A DNA stretch of 64,000 bases, from assembly GCA_964188305.1 (NCBI GenBank), contig OZ076885.1. One strand, written 5' to 3'. Shown one piece after another: positions 45,750 through 52,579 of the stretch. The stretch's first letter is position 1. Each line of letters starts with the position of its first letter. This DNA is from Podarcis bocagei (taxonomy: Eukaryota). The position numbers and the translations under genes were made by a program. Under the pieces are notes generated by a model, which saw nothing but the letters and a program-made list of their open reading frames with translations, was not told the origin of the DNA and searched no databases.

Positions 45750-45764
45750 AAAGAGTGGGTTTTC
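45750..45764 (+). repeat. L1 target-site duplication, 5' copy (3' copy 52499-52513)
   Basis: aaagagtgggttttc is identical on both sides of the element. Confidence 0.93.
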
Positions 45765-46250
45765 GACTTCCGGTTCCGGACGCGAGCAGTGAGGAAGCAC
45801 AGAAAGCCAGCTCTTGGCTTTCTGGGCGCTGTGAGATTGTGGGGAAAGACGCGAGGGCGCAGCGTACCCCGAAACCTCAGGGGGGGAACCCTTGGGGGAG
45901 AGGCCACCTGCAGCGTGGACGCGGTCGACCTATCCCTCTGGGAAAAGAGAACAGAGAGGAACGAGAGAACGGCGACCGCTAGCGCAAACTGGGAAGTGCC
46001 GCCTCACAGCGAAACGCCCAGAGCTTCAGCTGCAACAGCGTCGGAGCTCCTCAAGATAAGAACGGGGTCTCCAGCATGGGAAATTTTCTTTTTTGAAGTG
46101 CTTATTATATATAAGCGCGCAGTTGGCGTGAAGCTAGGAGACGCCCAGGTTTTTTTTTCTTTGTTTGTTTATTTATGGGATTCTCCTCGGCAGCGGAGAC
46201 AAGATGGCGCAGAAGGGGAGCCGCAGGAGTGAGGAGGTCAGTGAATTCAG
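45765..46250 (+). promoter_or_regulatory. L1 internal promoter / CpG-rich 5' region
   Basis: Starts GACTTCCGG (ETS/GABP-type core); dense CpG; YY1-type AAGATGGCG at 46201-46209. Confidence 0.65.
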
Positions 46251-46794
46251 TCTGACTGAATGAGCAAGAGCCGAGTTGATAGTGAATTTGGACTGAATTG
46301 TTTTTTTTTTAATGATTTCAAGGACTAAATTGTATTAAACAATATAACGCCAATTCCGGGGGCAGACAGTGACGGACGCTTTTCCAAGCTCCCCGGTGAG
46401 GTCTCGTTTTGACTACGACGACCCCCCCAATATCATCTACGCTCCTCAAGGATATTTACTCAAGGACAGACGGGTGAGGACTCGCCAAGGGAGGTGCGGT
46501 AGGGGTCTGACCCTCGGTTTGCAGCCTGAGATACGTTAAAGACGCCCAAAGCTGTGACGGTAACAACAGGACAGGTCGCTGTTGCAAACAGCCGGCTATT
46601 GGTGGCGGAAGTCGGACGCTGAGTAATCAACGGTACAGAAGTTTCCCTCTGTTTGTTTATTTGTTTGTTTGTTTTTTTCATGACTGTGCCTGACCTGTGT
46701 GGGGCTGAAGAGGAGGGCATGAAACTCTGAGTGGGAGCCTTGACTGTAATCGGGGGATATCATTGGGATCGCAATCACTTGGTGAGAGGAGACC

Positions 46795-46911
46795 AAAGTG
46801 CGTAAAGTGCTTAAAGTGTTCAAAGTGTCTGAAGTTCCTGAAGTGCTGGAAGTGCCGGAAGTGCTAGAAGTGTTGGAAGCCCCTGAAGCTCCTGAAGTAC
46901 CGGGAGTGAAT
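46795..46911 (+). repeat. 9-bp tandem array (RAAGTGNNN-like, 13 units) in the L1 5'UTR
   Basis: aaagtgcgt aaagtgctt aaagtgttc aaagtgtct gaagttcct gaagtgctg gaagtgccg gaagtgcta gaagtgttg gaagcccct gaagctcct gaagtaccg ggagtgaat. Confidence 0.85.
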
Positions 46912-47405
46912 TAATCAGGACTAAAATTGACTGTATAGGAAAAGAAGTTGTGTAGGACGACCACGTTTCCAATTAGACTCTAATAGACTTTTATAGACGC
47001 TCCACCCCTCTCCCACCTACCATTCCCCCCCCCTTCCCTTCACCCTTCTTCGGAGTGCTGGGCGCTGGACGTGACGCAGGTGAAACTAGGCAAAAAGACT
47101 CGAGGGGAGGACTGAGAGGAGTAGAAGGGGAAAACAAATTAAAGCCAGGAGTGGACTAATCGATGTTTCTGGAACAAGAATTCCCCCCAGGCTTTTAAAG
47201 GGTATATAGAGGGTTTGTCGGTTCTCCCGGGGTATACATGTATTTTGTATGGACATTGGATGGGACAAGATCAGTTATAACATTTACCACCCCAGCAGGC
47301 GCTCTCTGAGGGGAAAGGAGGGAAAGGTCAGGATTATAGGACTATAGGACGAAAAAGGATTATAGGAAAGAACTAACGGTGAATAAAGGGAGTGCGTCAC
47401 AAATA

Positions 47406-48467
47406 ATGATGGGGAAGGAAGGGAGGGACGCAAAGAAAGTCGGTGGGACCCCGGGGGAGAGAAAGACATCACGCCAAGAGGAGATCAAAGATTTAGATAG
47501 CTTATGGTTCAAAATAAAGGAAGAATTTAAACAAAACGAAACATATATAGAAAATAAGCTAGGGGATATGCAAGAACTGATTGACAAAAAAATAGAAGAG
47601 GCAGTAGGAGAGCTCTCATCAAAAATCCAAGACCTGTCAGTAAAATCTAAGATAATTGAGGAGTCTAATAAGAAATTACAGAAAGAAATGAGGGAACAGA
47701 AAAAAGAAACAGGGAGGATGAGGGAAGAGTTGGGGGAGTTAAATAAAGCACAGGACAGGATTTGGGACAATCTTGCTATGGCGGACATGCGTCAAAAGCA
47801 GCTCCATTTAAAATTTAGAGGTGTGGCAGAAGAAAGAAATGAAGATGTCAGGAAGAAAATGATTAAGGAGCTATCTAAATGGTTGGGCCTGGAAGAAGAA
47901 GAGATAGCACTAACAATAGATAACGTATTTAGAATGTCTAGACCACAACATTTAAAACCTAATAAATTTTTGGGAGACTGTCTGGTGATATTTAACTCCT
48001 TAGAAATGAGAAATCTAATTCTAAGGACGAGCTATCGTAATAAACTCAGAATTGAAGGTAGACCCATCATTATCTACAAAGAAATCCCAATCAGACTATT
48101 ACGAAAAAGAGAGGGCTATAGACAAGTGGTCGCGGCTCTAAGGAGGAATGGAATACAATTTAGGTGGGAGTTCCCCGAGGGGATCACCTTCTTCTACAAA
48201 GATAAGAAATTTAAACTGACGGATATACAGGAAACAGAGAAGTTCCTGAGAAGATATGAAAGAGAGCTGGGAAGGACAGAGTATAGACTGCGAGATAGGG
48301 AAGAAACGAAGGGGAATGGTCGGGAGAAGGAAGAGGAGGGGGAGGAGAGCGCGAAAGACCAAGGAGATAGGGGGTCAATCTCAGGAGATGAAGAGGAGGA
48401 AGCCGCAGTGGGAGAAGGGGCGGCTGAGGAGGAGGGGCTCTCAGGAAACAAAGGCGCTAGATTCTAA
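47406..48467 (+). CDS. L1 ORF1p (coiled coil + RRM + CTD) with acidic tail, 353 aa from first ATG
   Basis: ATGATG at 47406; heptad-rich K/E coiled coil; RQKQLHLKFRGVAE (RRM start); LRRNGIQFRWEFP (CTD motif). Confidence 0.9.
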   Translation: MMGKEGRDAKKVGGTPGERKTSRQEEIKDLDSLWFKIKEEFKQNETYIENKLGDMQELIDKKIEEAVGELSSKIQDLSVKSKIIEESNKKLQKEMREQKKETGRMREELGELNKAQDRIWDNLAMADMRQKQLHLKFRGVAEERNEDVRKKMIKELSKWLGLEEEEIALTIDNVFRMSRPQHLKPNKFLGDCLVIFNSLEMRNLILRTSYRNKLRIEGRPIIIYKEIPIRLLRKREGYRQVVAALRRNGIQFRWEFPEGITFFYKDKKFKLTDIQETEKFLRRYERELGRTEYRLRDREETKGNGREKEEEGEESAKDQGDRGSISGDEEEEAAVGEGAAEEEGLSGNKGARF

Positions 48468-48513
48468 TTAGAGCTTTGACCTGAGATAGAGTAGTCGGAG
48501 AACTAAGATAACA

Positions 48514-51500
48514 CTGGACACTTTAAAATTTTTATCGTGGAACGTGAATGGGTTGAATGAGAAAATTAAAAGAAATAAAATCCAAAAAGCTTTGAGAAAT
48601 AAGAAATGTGATGTAATCTGTGTTCAGGAAACTCATATTGCAAAGAGGCATAGACATATTTTGATGAACAAAAAGTTGGGAGTAGAATTTGTAAATTCGG
48701 ATGTAAACAAAAAAAGAGGAGTGGTAATATACGCCAAAGAAAGGTGGGAACCAATACAAATTTGTAAAGATGAGGAAGGGAGAATATTAGGTATTCAATT
48801 AAATTTTCGAGGGGAAAGAATTAATGTAGTGTCGGTATATGCACCGAACTCAAATAGAGCAGAGTTCTTTGAAAAACTTGAAAGTTTACTGCTGGAACTG
48901 GATCCTTATAAGTTAATTCTATTGGGAGATTGGAACGGGGTACCAACACCAAGTATGGACAGAAGTGAGAACCAGAGGAACGTAAACAGGGGGAAGCTCC
49001 CCAATGCTTTCAATGATTTAGTGGAAAATTTAGATCTAATTGATATCTGGAGACACCGAAATCCCACCACTAAACAGTTCACTCACTACTCAGAGCCCCA
49101 CAAAAGTTGGGGCAGGATCGATCAGATATGGGTGACTAGGGCGATGGTATGGAGAGTTAAGAGATGTGAGATATTACCCAGGACCCTGTCAGATCACTGC
49201 CCTTTGGTCTTGGAAATTAAAAACGAATTGAAAGGGCAACCCAGGTGGAGGATGAATGAATATCTATTTGAGAATGAGGAAGTGCTAGATATGGCCAAAA
49301 AAACTCTGAGAGAGTACCTGGCGATAAATTTGAGTAGAGACACCCCAATAGAGGTGGTATGGGATGCCGGTAAGGCAGTCCTAAGGGGCTTTTTGATACA
49401 GCAAAATAGTTATAGAAAGAAGTTAAGGGAAAAAAAGAAGGACAATATTTTGGCCCAATTAAAAGATTGTGAAAGGAAACTGGCCTTAAATCCAACAGAT
49501 GAAACGATCAGCCAAGCGGTGAAGGTGTTGCAGTCCCAATACTCAGCTATTTTGAACCAGGAGATAGAACAAAAAATTAAATTTACAAGACAGAAATATT
49601 TCGAGTCGGCCAATAAAATGGGGAAGCTGCTTGCATGGCAGCTCAGGAAAAGAAAGAAACAAAATACGATTAATAAACTTATTGTAGATGAGAGGGTGAT
49701 AGAGGACCCGAGTGAAATTGAACGCAGATTTGTTGCTTTTTTTGAAAAGTTGTATGAAAAAGGAGAAGAGAGTAGTGCAGAAGTAAAAAACTACCTGGAT
49801 CAAGAAGAAAGAAAATTTTTTACAGAAGAGGACTGTATACAACTAAACAAAGCGGTGTCTGGAAAGGAGGTCAGGGATGCCATTAATAAGATGAAGAACG
49901 GGAAGTCCCCAGGTCCGGACGGCCTGCCAGCAAAATATTACAAGAAATTGGTAGATCTGTTAGCGCCGGTATTAACAGAGGTAATAAATAACACTCTCCA
50001 AGAGGGGAGGATCCCTAGTTCCTGGAAGGAGGCGTACATTACGCTGATTCCCAAGACAGAAAACGAAAAGACAGATTTAAAAAATTATAGGCCAATTTCA
50101 CTTTTAAATTGTGATTACAAGGTTTTCGCTGACATCATGGCAAGTAGACTCAAAAATCTACTAAACAGATATATACATAGAGATCAAGTGGGATTTCTCC
50201 CAGGGAGGCAATTGAGGGACAATGTCCGGCACGTATTAGATATAATGGAGTTCCTGGAGGCAAGACCAGATGTACCAGCGGCCCTTATCTTCATTGACGC
50301 AGAAAAAGCTTTTGATCGCGTCTCCTGGGAATTTCTGTTGCAAAATATAGATAAGGTGGGAATAGGGGGCCCCTACTTGAAGGCTATTAGGGCGATCTAT
50401 ACAGAACAGCAGGCTAGGCTGATTATTAATAATAACCTGACTAAACATTTTTCAATAATGAAAGGGACAAGGCAGGGTTGCCCTCTGTCACCTTTACTGT
50501 TTATTTTGGTGTTAGAAACAGCCGCGAACAAAATAAGAGCGACCCCGAATATTAGGGGATTAAAAATTGGAGAGAAAGAATACAAACTAAAGGCCTACGC
50601 TGATGACCTGGTCCTTTTCTTAGAGAACCCAATTGAAAGTATTAGCAGAGCGGTAGAACTCTTGGAAGAGTTCGGTAAATTATCCGGATTCAAGTTAAAT
50701 AGGGGGAAAACCAAAATATTAATAAAGAACTTAACAGCACAGGAGAGATTACAGCTGGAACAACAGGTGGACATTAAAGTAGTAAATAAAGTGAAATATT
50801 TGGGAATCTGGTTATCCCCAAAGAATATTAACTTAGTAGAAGATAATTATAATAAACTTTGGAAAGAAATGAAGAAAGACATGGACACCTGGCGTAGATT
50901 GAATCTATCCTGGACGGGGAGGATGGCATCGATTAAGATGTGTATTCTCCCGAGGCTGTTATTTCTGTTCCAGAACTTACCAGTTATAAAAGGTACCGCC
51001 TGCTTTAAAAACTGGCAAAGGACCTTGACCAAATATATTTGGCAGGAGAAGAAACCTAGGGTGAAACTTAAATATTTGATGGATTCTAGGGAAAGAGGGG
51101 GCTTTGGTGTACCAAATTTAAGGCTCTATTACGAGGCGGCATGTTTACTTTGGATTAAAGAATGGGTCACATTGAAAGATACTGATCTACTAGACCTAGA
51201 AGGATTTGATTTAAGATTTGGGTGGCATGCCTACCTCTGGCAGGAGAAAGATAAAATTCATAGAGGTTTTTATAATCATTCAGTTAGAGGGCCACTTTTA
51301 GAAGTTTGGAATAGGAAGAAAAGCGTGATAGAACAAAGTACCCCTTGGTGGCTCTCACCCGTGGACATTATCAAAATAAAGAAAGTAAACATGACAGGTA
51401 GAAGGTGGACGTATGAAGATCTCCTAATTAAATCAGAAGAAGGGTGGAAATTAAGACAGCAGGATGAATTAAAAGAGAAAATCAAGGACTGGTTTCATTT

Positions 51501-52266
51501 ACATCAAATTAACGCACTATGGAGGGAACATAAGAGAATAGGCATGGGAGAAAATAAATCTAGATTCCAAGTAGAGATTATTGAGAGTAACAATAAATTA
51601 TTATCTAAAATGTATAGGCAACTGCTGGAAAATGAAAATAAGGAAGTGCTGATCAAAGAGGTAATGACTAAATGGAATAAAGACCTTGGATATGAGCTAG
51701 GTTATGACAAATGGCAAACTTTGTGGAAGTATGGCTTGAGATTTACGGCATGTGCTGATTTAAGGGAGAATTTATACAAGATGATGTACCGTTGGTACCT
51801 GACCCCGGCTAGATTAGGGAGAATGTATAGAACAGCAGATAATACTTGTTGGAGGTGCAAAGAGAAGGTGGGGACCTTCATTCATATTTGGTGGACCTGC
51901 GGGGAAGTGAAAGGTTTCTGGGGACAAATTTACGAGGAGTTAAAGAAAATTTTGAAGTATAATTTCCCCAAGAACCCCGAAGCTTTCCTCTTAGGGATGA
52001 TTGGGGAGGAAATAAAAAAATCAGATCAGACCTTCTTTCAGTATGCTACTACTGCTGCAAGGATTTTAATAGCAAAGAAATGGAAATCCCCCGAAATACC
52101 AACAATGAAAGAGTGGCGGGTGAAATTGTATCAATATGTGGAATTGGCGAAACTTACACAATATATTAGGCGGGACAACCCCAAAAAGACAGAGGATTGG
52201 TCCAAATTTTTAAGTTACCTTGAGATTAATTTAGGAATTAATAATTTGACAGTAGATGATGTTTGA
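48514..52266 (+). CDS. L1 ORF2p (APE endonuclease + reverse transcriptase + CCHC); 1250 aa if started at CTG 48514
   Basis: SWNVNGL, QETH, VYAP, GDWN, RID, SDH endonuclease motifs; DAEKAFD, QGCPLSP, YADD RT motifs; CWRC-x8-H-x4-C. The frame is open from 48490; the start codon is uncertain because there is no AUG. Confidence 0.93.
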   Translation: MDTLKFLSWNVNGLNEKIKRNKIQKALRNKKCDVICVQETHIAKRHRHILMNKKLGVEFVNSDVNKKRGVVIYAKERWEPIQICKDEEGRILGIQLNFRGERINVVSVYAPNSNRAEFFEKLESLLLELDPYKLILLGDWNGVPTPSMDRSENQRNVNRGKLPNAFNDLVENLDLIDIWRHRNPTTKQFTHYSEPHKSWGRIDQIWVTRAMVWRVKRCEILPRTLSDHCPLVLEIKNELKGQPRWRMNEYLFENEEVLDMAKKTLREYLAINLSRDTPIEVVWDAGKAVLRGFLIQQNSYRKKLREKKKDNILAQLKDCERKLALNPTDETISQAVKVLQSQYSAILNQEIEQKIKFTRQKYFESANKMGKLLAWQLRKRKKQNTINKLIVDERVIEDPSEIERRFVAFFEKLYEKGEESSAEVKNYLDQEERKFFTEEDCIQLNKAVSGKEVRDAINKMKNGKSPGPDGLPAKYYKKLVDLLAPVLTEVINNTLQEGRIPSSWKEAYITLIPKTENEKTDLKNYRPISLLNCDYKVFADIMASRLKNLLNRYIHRDQVGFLPGRQLRDNVRHVLDIMEFLEARPDVPAALIFIDAEKAFDRVSWEFLLQNIDKVGIGGPYLKAIRAIYTEQQARLIINNNLTKHFSIMKGTRQGCPLSPLLFILVLETAANKIRATPNIRGLKIGEKEYKLKAYADDLVLFLENPIESISRAVELLEEFGKLSGFKLNRGKTKILIKNLTAQERLQLEQQVDIKVVNKVKYLGIWLSPKNINLVEDNYNKLWKEMKKDMDTWRRLNLSWTGRMASIKMCILPRLLFLFQNLPVIKGTACFKNWQRTLTKYIWQEKKPRVKLKYLMDSRERGGFGVPNLRLYYEAACLLWIKEWVTLKDTDLLDLEGFDLRFGWHAYLWQEKDKIHRGFYNHSVRGPLLEVWNRKKSVIEQSTPWWLSPVDIIKIKKVNMTGRRWTYEDLLIKSEEGWKLRQQDELKEKIKDWFHLHQINALWREHKRIGMGENKSRFQVEIIESNNKLLSKMYRQLLENENKEVLIKEVMTKWNKDLGYELGYDKWQTLWKYGLRFTACADLRENLYKMMYRWYLTPARLGRMYRTADNTCWRCKEKVGTFIHIWWTCGEVKGFWGQIYEELKKILKYNFPKNPEAFLLGMIGEEIKKSDQTFFQYATTAARILIAKKWKSPEIPTMKEWRVKLYQYVELAKLTQYIRRDNPKKTEDWSKFLSYLEINLGINNLTVDDV

Positions 52267-52579
52267 CTCCTACGACGTGGAAAGATGAATGAAAACAACT
52301 GCAGATGATATATGTAGAATATTTAATCCAAAGCTGAGGTTATTGGAAGTCAAATGTGTGTAAGGGTGTGATTGGTTTTCTTTTTTCTTTCTTCTTTGTT
52401 CGCTTTTTTTCTTTTCCAGGTGTATATGTCTGATTTTATGTATGTGTAATTTTATGTGCTTGCAATAAAGTTTGAAAAAAAAAATTAAAAAAAAAAAAAA
52501 AGAGTGGGTTTTCATGGGGAAAACTCTGAGGGGGGACCCCAAATGCTCAAAGGGCTTTTAAATGTGGGCTTATGGTGGT

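Follow-up and report, generated by a model that had tools for sequence, protein, structure and literature searches.

Apparent Loss of the ORF2 Initiator AUG in an Old Lacertid L1 Retrotransposon Lineage

A stretch of 64,000 nucleotides of Podarcis bocagei DNA (contig OZ076885.1 of assembly GCA_964188305.1; the whole stretch is hereafter called the window) contains a full-length L1-type retrotransposon whose second open reading frame (ORF2), encoding an endonuclease and a reverse transcriptase, lacks an ATG where its translation should begin. Comparison with related elements leads us to favor the view that the ORF2 AUG has been lost throughout an old lacertid (Podarcis-type) L1 lineage, in which ORF2 would be initiated independently of AUG after termination on ORF1. 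To the more specific proposal, that this is an ancient and still active lineage that has long lacked an ORF2 AUG and reinitiates at a non-AUG codon (AUA and/or CUG), we give an even chance.

How the ORF2 protein (ORF2p) is translated from the bicistronic L1 RNA is unsettled; proposals include reinitiation, internal ribosome entry, and scanning across the spacer. In human L1, ORF2 translation needs an upstream translated ORF, and the ORF2 AUG, the spacer, and the 3′ end of ORF1 are dispensable, according to the accounts of Alisch 2006 given in PMC4091050 and PMC5972666. This AUG independence of mutated human L1 is the strangest piece of the puzzle, and a long-lived, mobile lineage without the AUG would show its use in vivo. 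If our reading is true, the lineage provides natural evolutionary evidence that L1 ORF2 translation needs no AUG, evidence that has so far come from engineered human elements only.

The ORF1–ORF2 Junction

The features on which the argument depends are as follows; L001 and the X11 contig are relatives of the element described below.

47406–48467, plus strand: ORF1, 353 codons, from ATG at 47406 to TAA at 48465–48467
48468–48513, plus strand: inter-ORF spacer of 46 nt without an ATG, with ORF2-frame TAG codons at 48469–48471 and 48487–48489 and an ORF1-frame TGA at 48477–48479
48490–52266, plus strand: open frame of ORF2, 1,258 codons plus stop, with no in-frame ATG ahead of codon 59
48508–48510, plus strand: in-frame ATA (AUA) with A at −3, the sole near-cognate codon held in common with L001 (at 1634) and the X11 contig
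48514–48516, plus strand: in-frame CTG (CUG) in the context ataacaCTGg, with A at −3 and G at +4
48517–48519, plus strand: GAC, homologous by alignment to the canonical ORF2 ATG of sister L1 families
48532–49197, plus strand: APE-type endonuclease, ORF2 codons 15–236 (Pfam PF03372, Exo_endo_phos, E = 4e-14, profile positions 1–225 of 225)
48664–48666, plus strand: first in-frame ORF2 ATG, codon 59, 3′ of the SWNVNG and QETH motifs
50068–50811, plus strand: reverse transcriptase, ORF2 codons 527–774 (Pfam PF00078, RVT_1, E = 1e-40)

From 48490 the ORF2 frame reads SSRRTKIT-L-DTLKFLSWNVNGL, the L being the CTG at 48514–48516. An earlier note on this DNA, made from its letters alone, had described the position of the ORF1 stop, the ATG-less spacer with its TAG at 48487–48489, and this frame with its CTG in strong context; it had also placed the first in-frame ATG beyond essential endonuclease residues and dismissed the ATGs at 48548 and 48557 as out of frame and short. 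Direct reading of the coordinates bears out all of these statements. There is no ATG in any frame between 48468 and 48547, and the ATGs that follow open out-of-frame stretches of 2 codons (48548), 12 codons (48557), and 1 codon each (48606 and 48611).

ORF2 has the N-terminal APE-type endonuclease and central reverse transcriptase expected of the L1 clade, and a cysteine-rich CCHC motif, CWRCKEKVGTFIHIWWTC, can be read directly in the translation at its C-terminus. Its closest relatives of solved structure are chains of human LINE-1 ORF2p (E about 1e-37), to which the alignment begins at ORF2 codon 13, equivalent to human residue 8. Because profile position 1 of the Pfam endonuclease match falls on codon 15, a start at the ATG 48664, or at the GTG at 48544, would cut off part of the endonuclease. 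ORF1 shares 70% identity with the ORF1 of L001 (P0076; 372 amino acids), and more distant homologues (60%–61% identity) carry the UniRef name "L1 transposable element RRM domain-containing protein"; a Pfam search of ORF1 with E values up to 1 returned no family, just weak coiled-coil-like noise.

As in the human type of bicistronic L1, the ORFs do not overlap and are separated by a short spacer containing stops. Since both ORF2-frame TAG codons (48469–48471 and 48487–48489) lie 3′ of the ORF1 TAA, a fusion of ORF1 and ORF2 by frameshifting or readthrough can be dismissed, and de novo initiation of ORF2 is required. Coupling through an overlapping stop and start, of the SART1 or calicivirus type, was likewise rejected, as no ATG occurs within 80 nt 3′ of the ORF1 stop.

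The Canonical Start in Sister Families

Many L1 families of Podarcis have an orthodox ORF2 start. Twenty-eight Podarcis ORF2 proteins begin with M-[TSANV]-L-[KQ]-x-[LFIWY]-[ST]-W-N, and the canonical ATG can be seen in the DNA of two families, L002 (OZ076972; gtcATGactcttaaagtcttatcttgg) and L003 (OZ076966; gtaATGtctttaacttttctaacgtgg). These and other Podarcis families (UniRef P0002, P0003, and P0009–P0033) resemble the window element in architecture and in the ORF2 N-terminus x-L-K/Q-x-L-S/T-W-N-V-N-G, but they carry ATG directly ahead of T/S/A-L-K, where the window's clade instead has GAC, CAG, or CAC.

The ORF2 starts of the window, L001, L002, L003, and L004 were aligned without gaps, running backwards from the TCGTGG that encodes S-W. 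In this alignment the ATG of L002 and L003 coincides with GAC 48517–48519 of the window, CAG of L001, and ACG of L004. The window's CTG sits one codon upstream of the canonical position and so is not, as had been claimed, at the expected start of ORF2. Two candidates were set aside as informative relatives. L004 is a decayed copy, and its ACG is uninformative; L005 (Podarcis lilfordi OX395133) is an inverted, truncated fragment without the ORF1–ORF2 junction. In L005, between 4084 and 5490, a minus-strand piece of the 5′ part of ORF2 adjoins a plus-strand piece of ORF1 at about 4997, so that the locus is an inverted and rearranged L1 insertion, the inversion possibly having arisen by twin priming.

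Relatives without the ATG

Of the relatives whose DNA is on record, L001 is the closest; in this 5.5-kb Logan contig, both ORF1 and ORF2 (1,253 codons) are intact. Its ORF2 is about 70% identical to that of the window over the full length and 73% across the first 400 residues. The frame opens after a stop as TAA, ATA ATA ACT CAG ACA CTA AAA CTT TTA TCG TGG, with neither ATG nor CTG, and the first in-frame Met is codon 127; the "M" with which the corresponding database protein (P0001) begins is a TTG picked by the gene caller. A second relative is a multi-copy contig from DNA run X11, which matches the window from 48524 on and differs upstream, where it reads TAA ACA ATA ACA CAC ACA C. Its frame through this region, TAA ACA ATA ACA CAC ACA CTA AAA TTT TTA TCG TGG (stop-T-I-T-H-T-L-K-F-L-S-W), also contains neither ATG nor CTG. 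The codon aligned to the window's CTG is thus ACT in L001 and ACA in the X11 contig, and no CUG occurs in either between the stop and T-L-K; of near-cognate codons, the three share just the in-frame ATA with A at −3.

A maximum-likelihood tree of 28 ORF2 proteins unites the window element, P0006, P0035, L001, P0013, and P0023 in a single clade (SH-aLRT support 100%), with P0002 (which, like the L002 type it represents, has the canonical Met) and P0008 as its neighbors. All close protein relatives are from Podarcis muralis. P0006 is 97%–98% identical; it and P0013 are known from UniRef only, with no gene DNA on record. Protein word searches with ORF2, with ORF1, and with a 100-amino-acid N-terminal piece did not turn up any near-identical genomic copy whose DNA is on record, and a pattern scan of metagenomes for the conserved ORF2 5′ motif came back blank.

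The annotation of these proteins agrees with the DNA. Among annotated P. muralis proteins of the clade, cluster members included, none of 14 starts at the canonical place, as against 28 of 48 in other lacertid families, counts that comprise non-independent events and are supportive and not decisive. P0006, P0013, P0023, P0035, and P0085–P0093 all begin at an internal Met, 126–155 or more residues into the real ORF, and five of the 14 clade proteins are exactly 1,127 amino acids long and begin MLLEL, at the Met homologous to the first in-frame Met of L001. We read these 1,127-residue proteins as what an annotation pipeline yields when it meets a full ORF without an upstream ATG, and the late starts of the clade's UniRef proteins probably arose in annotation, as an artefact of the absent ORF2 ATG.

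Purifying Selection on the ORF2 N-Terminus

Synonymous sites are saturated in the comparison of the window with L001 (proportion of synonymous differences, pS, 0.6–0.8), whereas nonsynonymous divergence (dN) is 0.15–0.19, giving an omega of about 0.09–0.16. Omega is low in the first 34 and the first 54 aligned codons as well as over the whole endonuclease. The boundary is also visible in nucleotide identity by block, which is 1–7 of 15 in the spacer and 12–13 of 15 from 48520 on, and the T-L-K codons at the edge of the conserved sequence differ only synonymously (ACT/ACA and TTA/CTA). Judged by this pattern, the sequence from 48520 on has been under translation and constraint in the lineages of both the window and L001 since an old split. 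Initiation must then lie upstream of 48520, within 48490–48519 in the window and within ATA ATA ACT CAG in L001.

How ORF2 Might Be Translated

From the junction, the relatives, and the constraint we infer how, and at which codon, ORF2 is initiated. Ribosomes that end ORF1 translation at the UAA 48465–48467 would remain on the RNA and restart about 40–50 nt downstream without an AUG, much as in the AUG-independent termination–reinitiation of human L1, so that ORF2p would be started de novo within the ten codons 48490–48519. Because of its good Kozak context, CUG 48514 is the likeliest candidate start in the window's family; as it is not conserved in the relatives, it is not a defining feature of the lineage. 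The ORF2p:ORF1p ratio is typically very low in L1, and the lower efficiency of near-cognate initiation would suit such a ratio. Reinitiation at near-cognate codons with initiator methionyl-tRNA (Met-tRNAi) is documented in other systems, at lower efficiency (PMC10275272).

Two known systems are instructive. Human LINE-1 is likewise bicistronic, with non-overlapping ORFs and a short, stop-bearing spacer (63 nt, against 46 nt in the window), but it has a natural ORF2 AUG and its AUG-less state was engineered, whereas in the window's clade the AUG is naturally absent, as known from sequence alone. In SART1 of the silkworm, another non-long-terminal-repeat element, ribosomes fresh from terminating on ORF1 go on to make ORF2 (PMC5972666), as we propose for the window element; SART1, however, uses an overlapping UAAUG with a real AUG and a required downstream RNA structure, whereas the window has no AUG, a 46-nt gap, and no significant structure.

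Several points weigh against lineage-wide loss followed by AUG-independent reinitiation. Reinitiation after a long ORF is usually inefficient and mostly prefers AUG (PMC10275272). The relatives seen as DNA, L001 and the X11 contig, come from one assembled contig each, and some of the clade proteins that begin at an internal Met could derive from 5′-truncated copies. Copies of the window's own family were checked through contigs of three low-coverage DNA runs, with three organism labels, and not as individual copies. Such contigs can represent multi-copy sequence only, and because the listed entries for other letters are those with full share in some run, a minority of family copies may carry A at 48514. 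The AUG may have been lost more than once rather than in one ancestor, and the one RNA run, X23, contributed 3 reads.

Among the alternatives, the most credible, though still a tentative one, is that CUG 48514 is itself the selected start, read with Met-tRNAi by a scanning or reinitiating 40S subunit and functionally replacing the lost AUG. Of the non-AUG start codons, CUG is in general used most efficiently, and this one is in frame, in strong context, and the first good near-cognate codon to follow the last stop, with no ATG in the spacer upstream to catch scanning subunits. It is nevertheless not kept in the relatives (ACT in L001, ACA in the X11 contig, and no CUG elsewhere from the stop to T-L-K), and among ten codons, one in-frame CUG could plausibly occur by chance. 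A weak AU-rich hairpin that begins 13 nt 3′ of the CUG could be counted in its favor, but its stability is no better than that of shuffled sequence (z about −0.4). The same hairpin (48527–48567) is also predicted in L001 (1650–1690); it lies within conserved coding sequence and is without statistical support. The suggestion that this is a natural L1 family using CUG for ORF2 is supported as to the absence of the AUG, which extends to the whole clade; as the start codon, the CUG lacks support from conservation but is a reasonable candidate for this family.

An element resembling an internal ribosome entry site (IRES), in the 3′ end of ORF1 or in the spacer, might instead direct ribosomes to a non-AUG codon without any need for ORF1 termination. 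There is published precedent: the sequence upstream of ORF2 in mouse L1 has been claimed to have IRES activity, and predictions place dicistrovirus-like IRESs in the long spacers of L1s (PMC5381506, PMC3894237). The window's spacer, however, is just 46 nt long and not conserved with L001, and the stability of folds of 141–146 nt around the junction does not exceed that of shuffled controls (z from −0.4 to +0.2); a short, unconserved spacer without structure beyond that of shuffled sequence argues against an IRES, which we consider unlikely.

It is more doubtful still that the clade's ORF2 goes untranslated, its members being non-autonomous passengers moved in trans by AUG-bearing L1s and the open ORF2 a sign of youth only. 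L1 families with a canonical ORF2 ATG do coexist with the clade in Podarcis in large number. Against such passengers stand the established cis-preference of L1 in mammals, the retention of long ORFs by several diverged subfamilies, and long-term purifying selection on ORF2, including the N-terminus of the endonuclease, with omega about 0.1 between families saturated at synonymous sites.

We attach slightly less credence again to an AUG supplied by RNA processing, for example by a spliced transcript that joins an upstream AUG in frame to ORF2; nothing emerged in its favor. Because the ORF2 frame is closed up to 48489, the splice acceptor would need to fall within 48490–48519, and no pyrimidine tract precedes that interval; the joints 46242>47403, 47122>47403, and 48438>48510 seen in contigs of the DNA runs represent variation at the DNA level, and the third of them is out of frame.

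Least probable of all is that the family carries ATG at 48514 and that a copy-specific lesion or sequencing error turned A to C in the window copy alone, an explanation that the earlier note had offered for an otherwise pristine copy: the CTG is one step from ATG, but the canonical ATG aligns with GAC 48517–48519, which differs from it at all three letters and so does not fit a single A>C change; L001 and the X11 contig also lack the ATG; and among the entries listed for the three DNA runs, each giving another letter whose share reaches 100% in one run or more (252 entries with partial shares being left out), no other letter is fixed at 48514–48516, yet others are fixed at 48474, 48476, and 48622. 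Places where the window has C and the contigs A are rare in any case (just 1–5 per run across 3.5 kb). One X11 contig of the window's own family (record 15) spans the junction, covering 48139–48611 with 8 differences from the window.

The same runs yielded two further observations on the junction. One multi-copy X11 contig is without the 71 nt from 48439 to 48509, joining 48438 to 48510; in this variant the ORF1 frame would continue to a TAA at 48524–48526, overlapping the start region of ORF2. ORF1 and ORF2 would then overlap as they do in the overlapping-ORF lizard L1s (PMC5381506). In addition, summed contig depth over 48508–48624 is 2- to 8-fold that of neighboring bins in all three DNA runs (in X1, 10,070 against 1,172 and 3,122). 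The first 100 nt or so of ORF2 are probably common, at 90% identity or more, to several L1 families or to a derived short element.

Novelty and Implications

In the limited collection of literature searched, no description of a natural L1 family devoid of an ORF2 AUG turned up. Translation probably proceeds by the mechanism already known for L1; the clade-wide natural absence of the AUG appears to be undescribed. Large L1 surveys have required a start codon for each ORF (PMC5203782), a filter through which AUG-less families could stay hidden. Pipelines that demand an ATG or take the first Met mis-annotate this clade and would undercount its intact elements; the UniProt entries of the clade from P. 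muralis begin 126–155 or more residues too late. The AUG-bearing sister families in the same genome offer a comparative system for mapping what positions the ribosome.

Anatomy and Age of the Element

The remaining features of the element are listed here.

45750–45764, plus strand: 5′ target-site duplication, AAAGAGTGGGTTTTC, with an identical 15-mer at 52499–52513
45765–52498, plus strand: full-length L1-type retrotransposon of about 6.7 kb, its ends set by the target-site duplication, comprising 5′ untranslated region (5′UTR), ORF1, ORF2, 3′UTR, and poly(A)
45765–47405, plus strand: GC-rich 5′UTR of about 1.64 kb, containing 9/27-nt tandem repeats at 46794–46898
52464–52469, plus strand: AATAAA in the 3′UTR
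52475–52498, plus strand: poly(A) tail
52499–52513, plus strand: 3′ target-site duplication, a perfect 15-bp match to 45750–45764

The poly(A) at 52475–52498 followed by the perfect 15-bp duplication is the mark of target-primed reverse transcription, and these two features, together with the open state of both ORF1 and ORF2, identify the element as young, full-length, and intact. A blastn search of the element against the window found no second copy there. Between 42% and 61% of the 31-mers of 48100–48900 are present in low-coverage DNA runs of six organism labels, and in run X1, 139 of 461 contigs are at least 99% alike; by these counts the family is both abundant and young. In its long GC-rich 5′UTR and short spacer, the element resembles the architecture of the "lizard clade 1" L1s of Boissinot and Sookdeo (PMC5381506), which have a long GC-rich 5′UTR and a short spacer or none.

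The tandem array at 46794–46898 in the 5′UTR consists of 9-nt units (GAAGTGCYN), also scored at period 27 with about 3.5 copies, and may represent monomer-like promoter repeats. The sequence CAAGATGGCG at 46202–46211, about 440 nt inside the 5′UTR, is identical to the core of the YY1 site, which in mammalian L1s is located at the 5′ end (PMC5381506). An antisense ORF of 142 codons from its ATG (47360–47788, minus strand) overlaps the start of ORF1 and is a mechanical ORF only.

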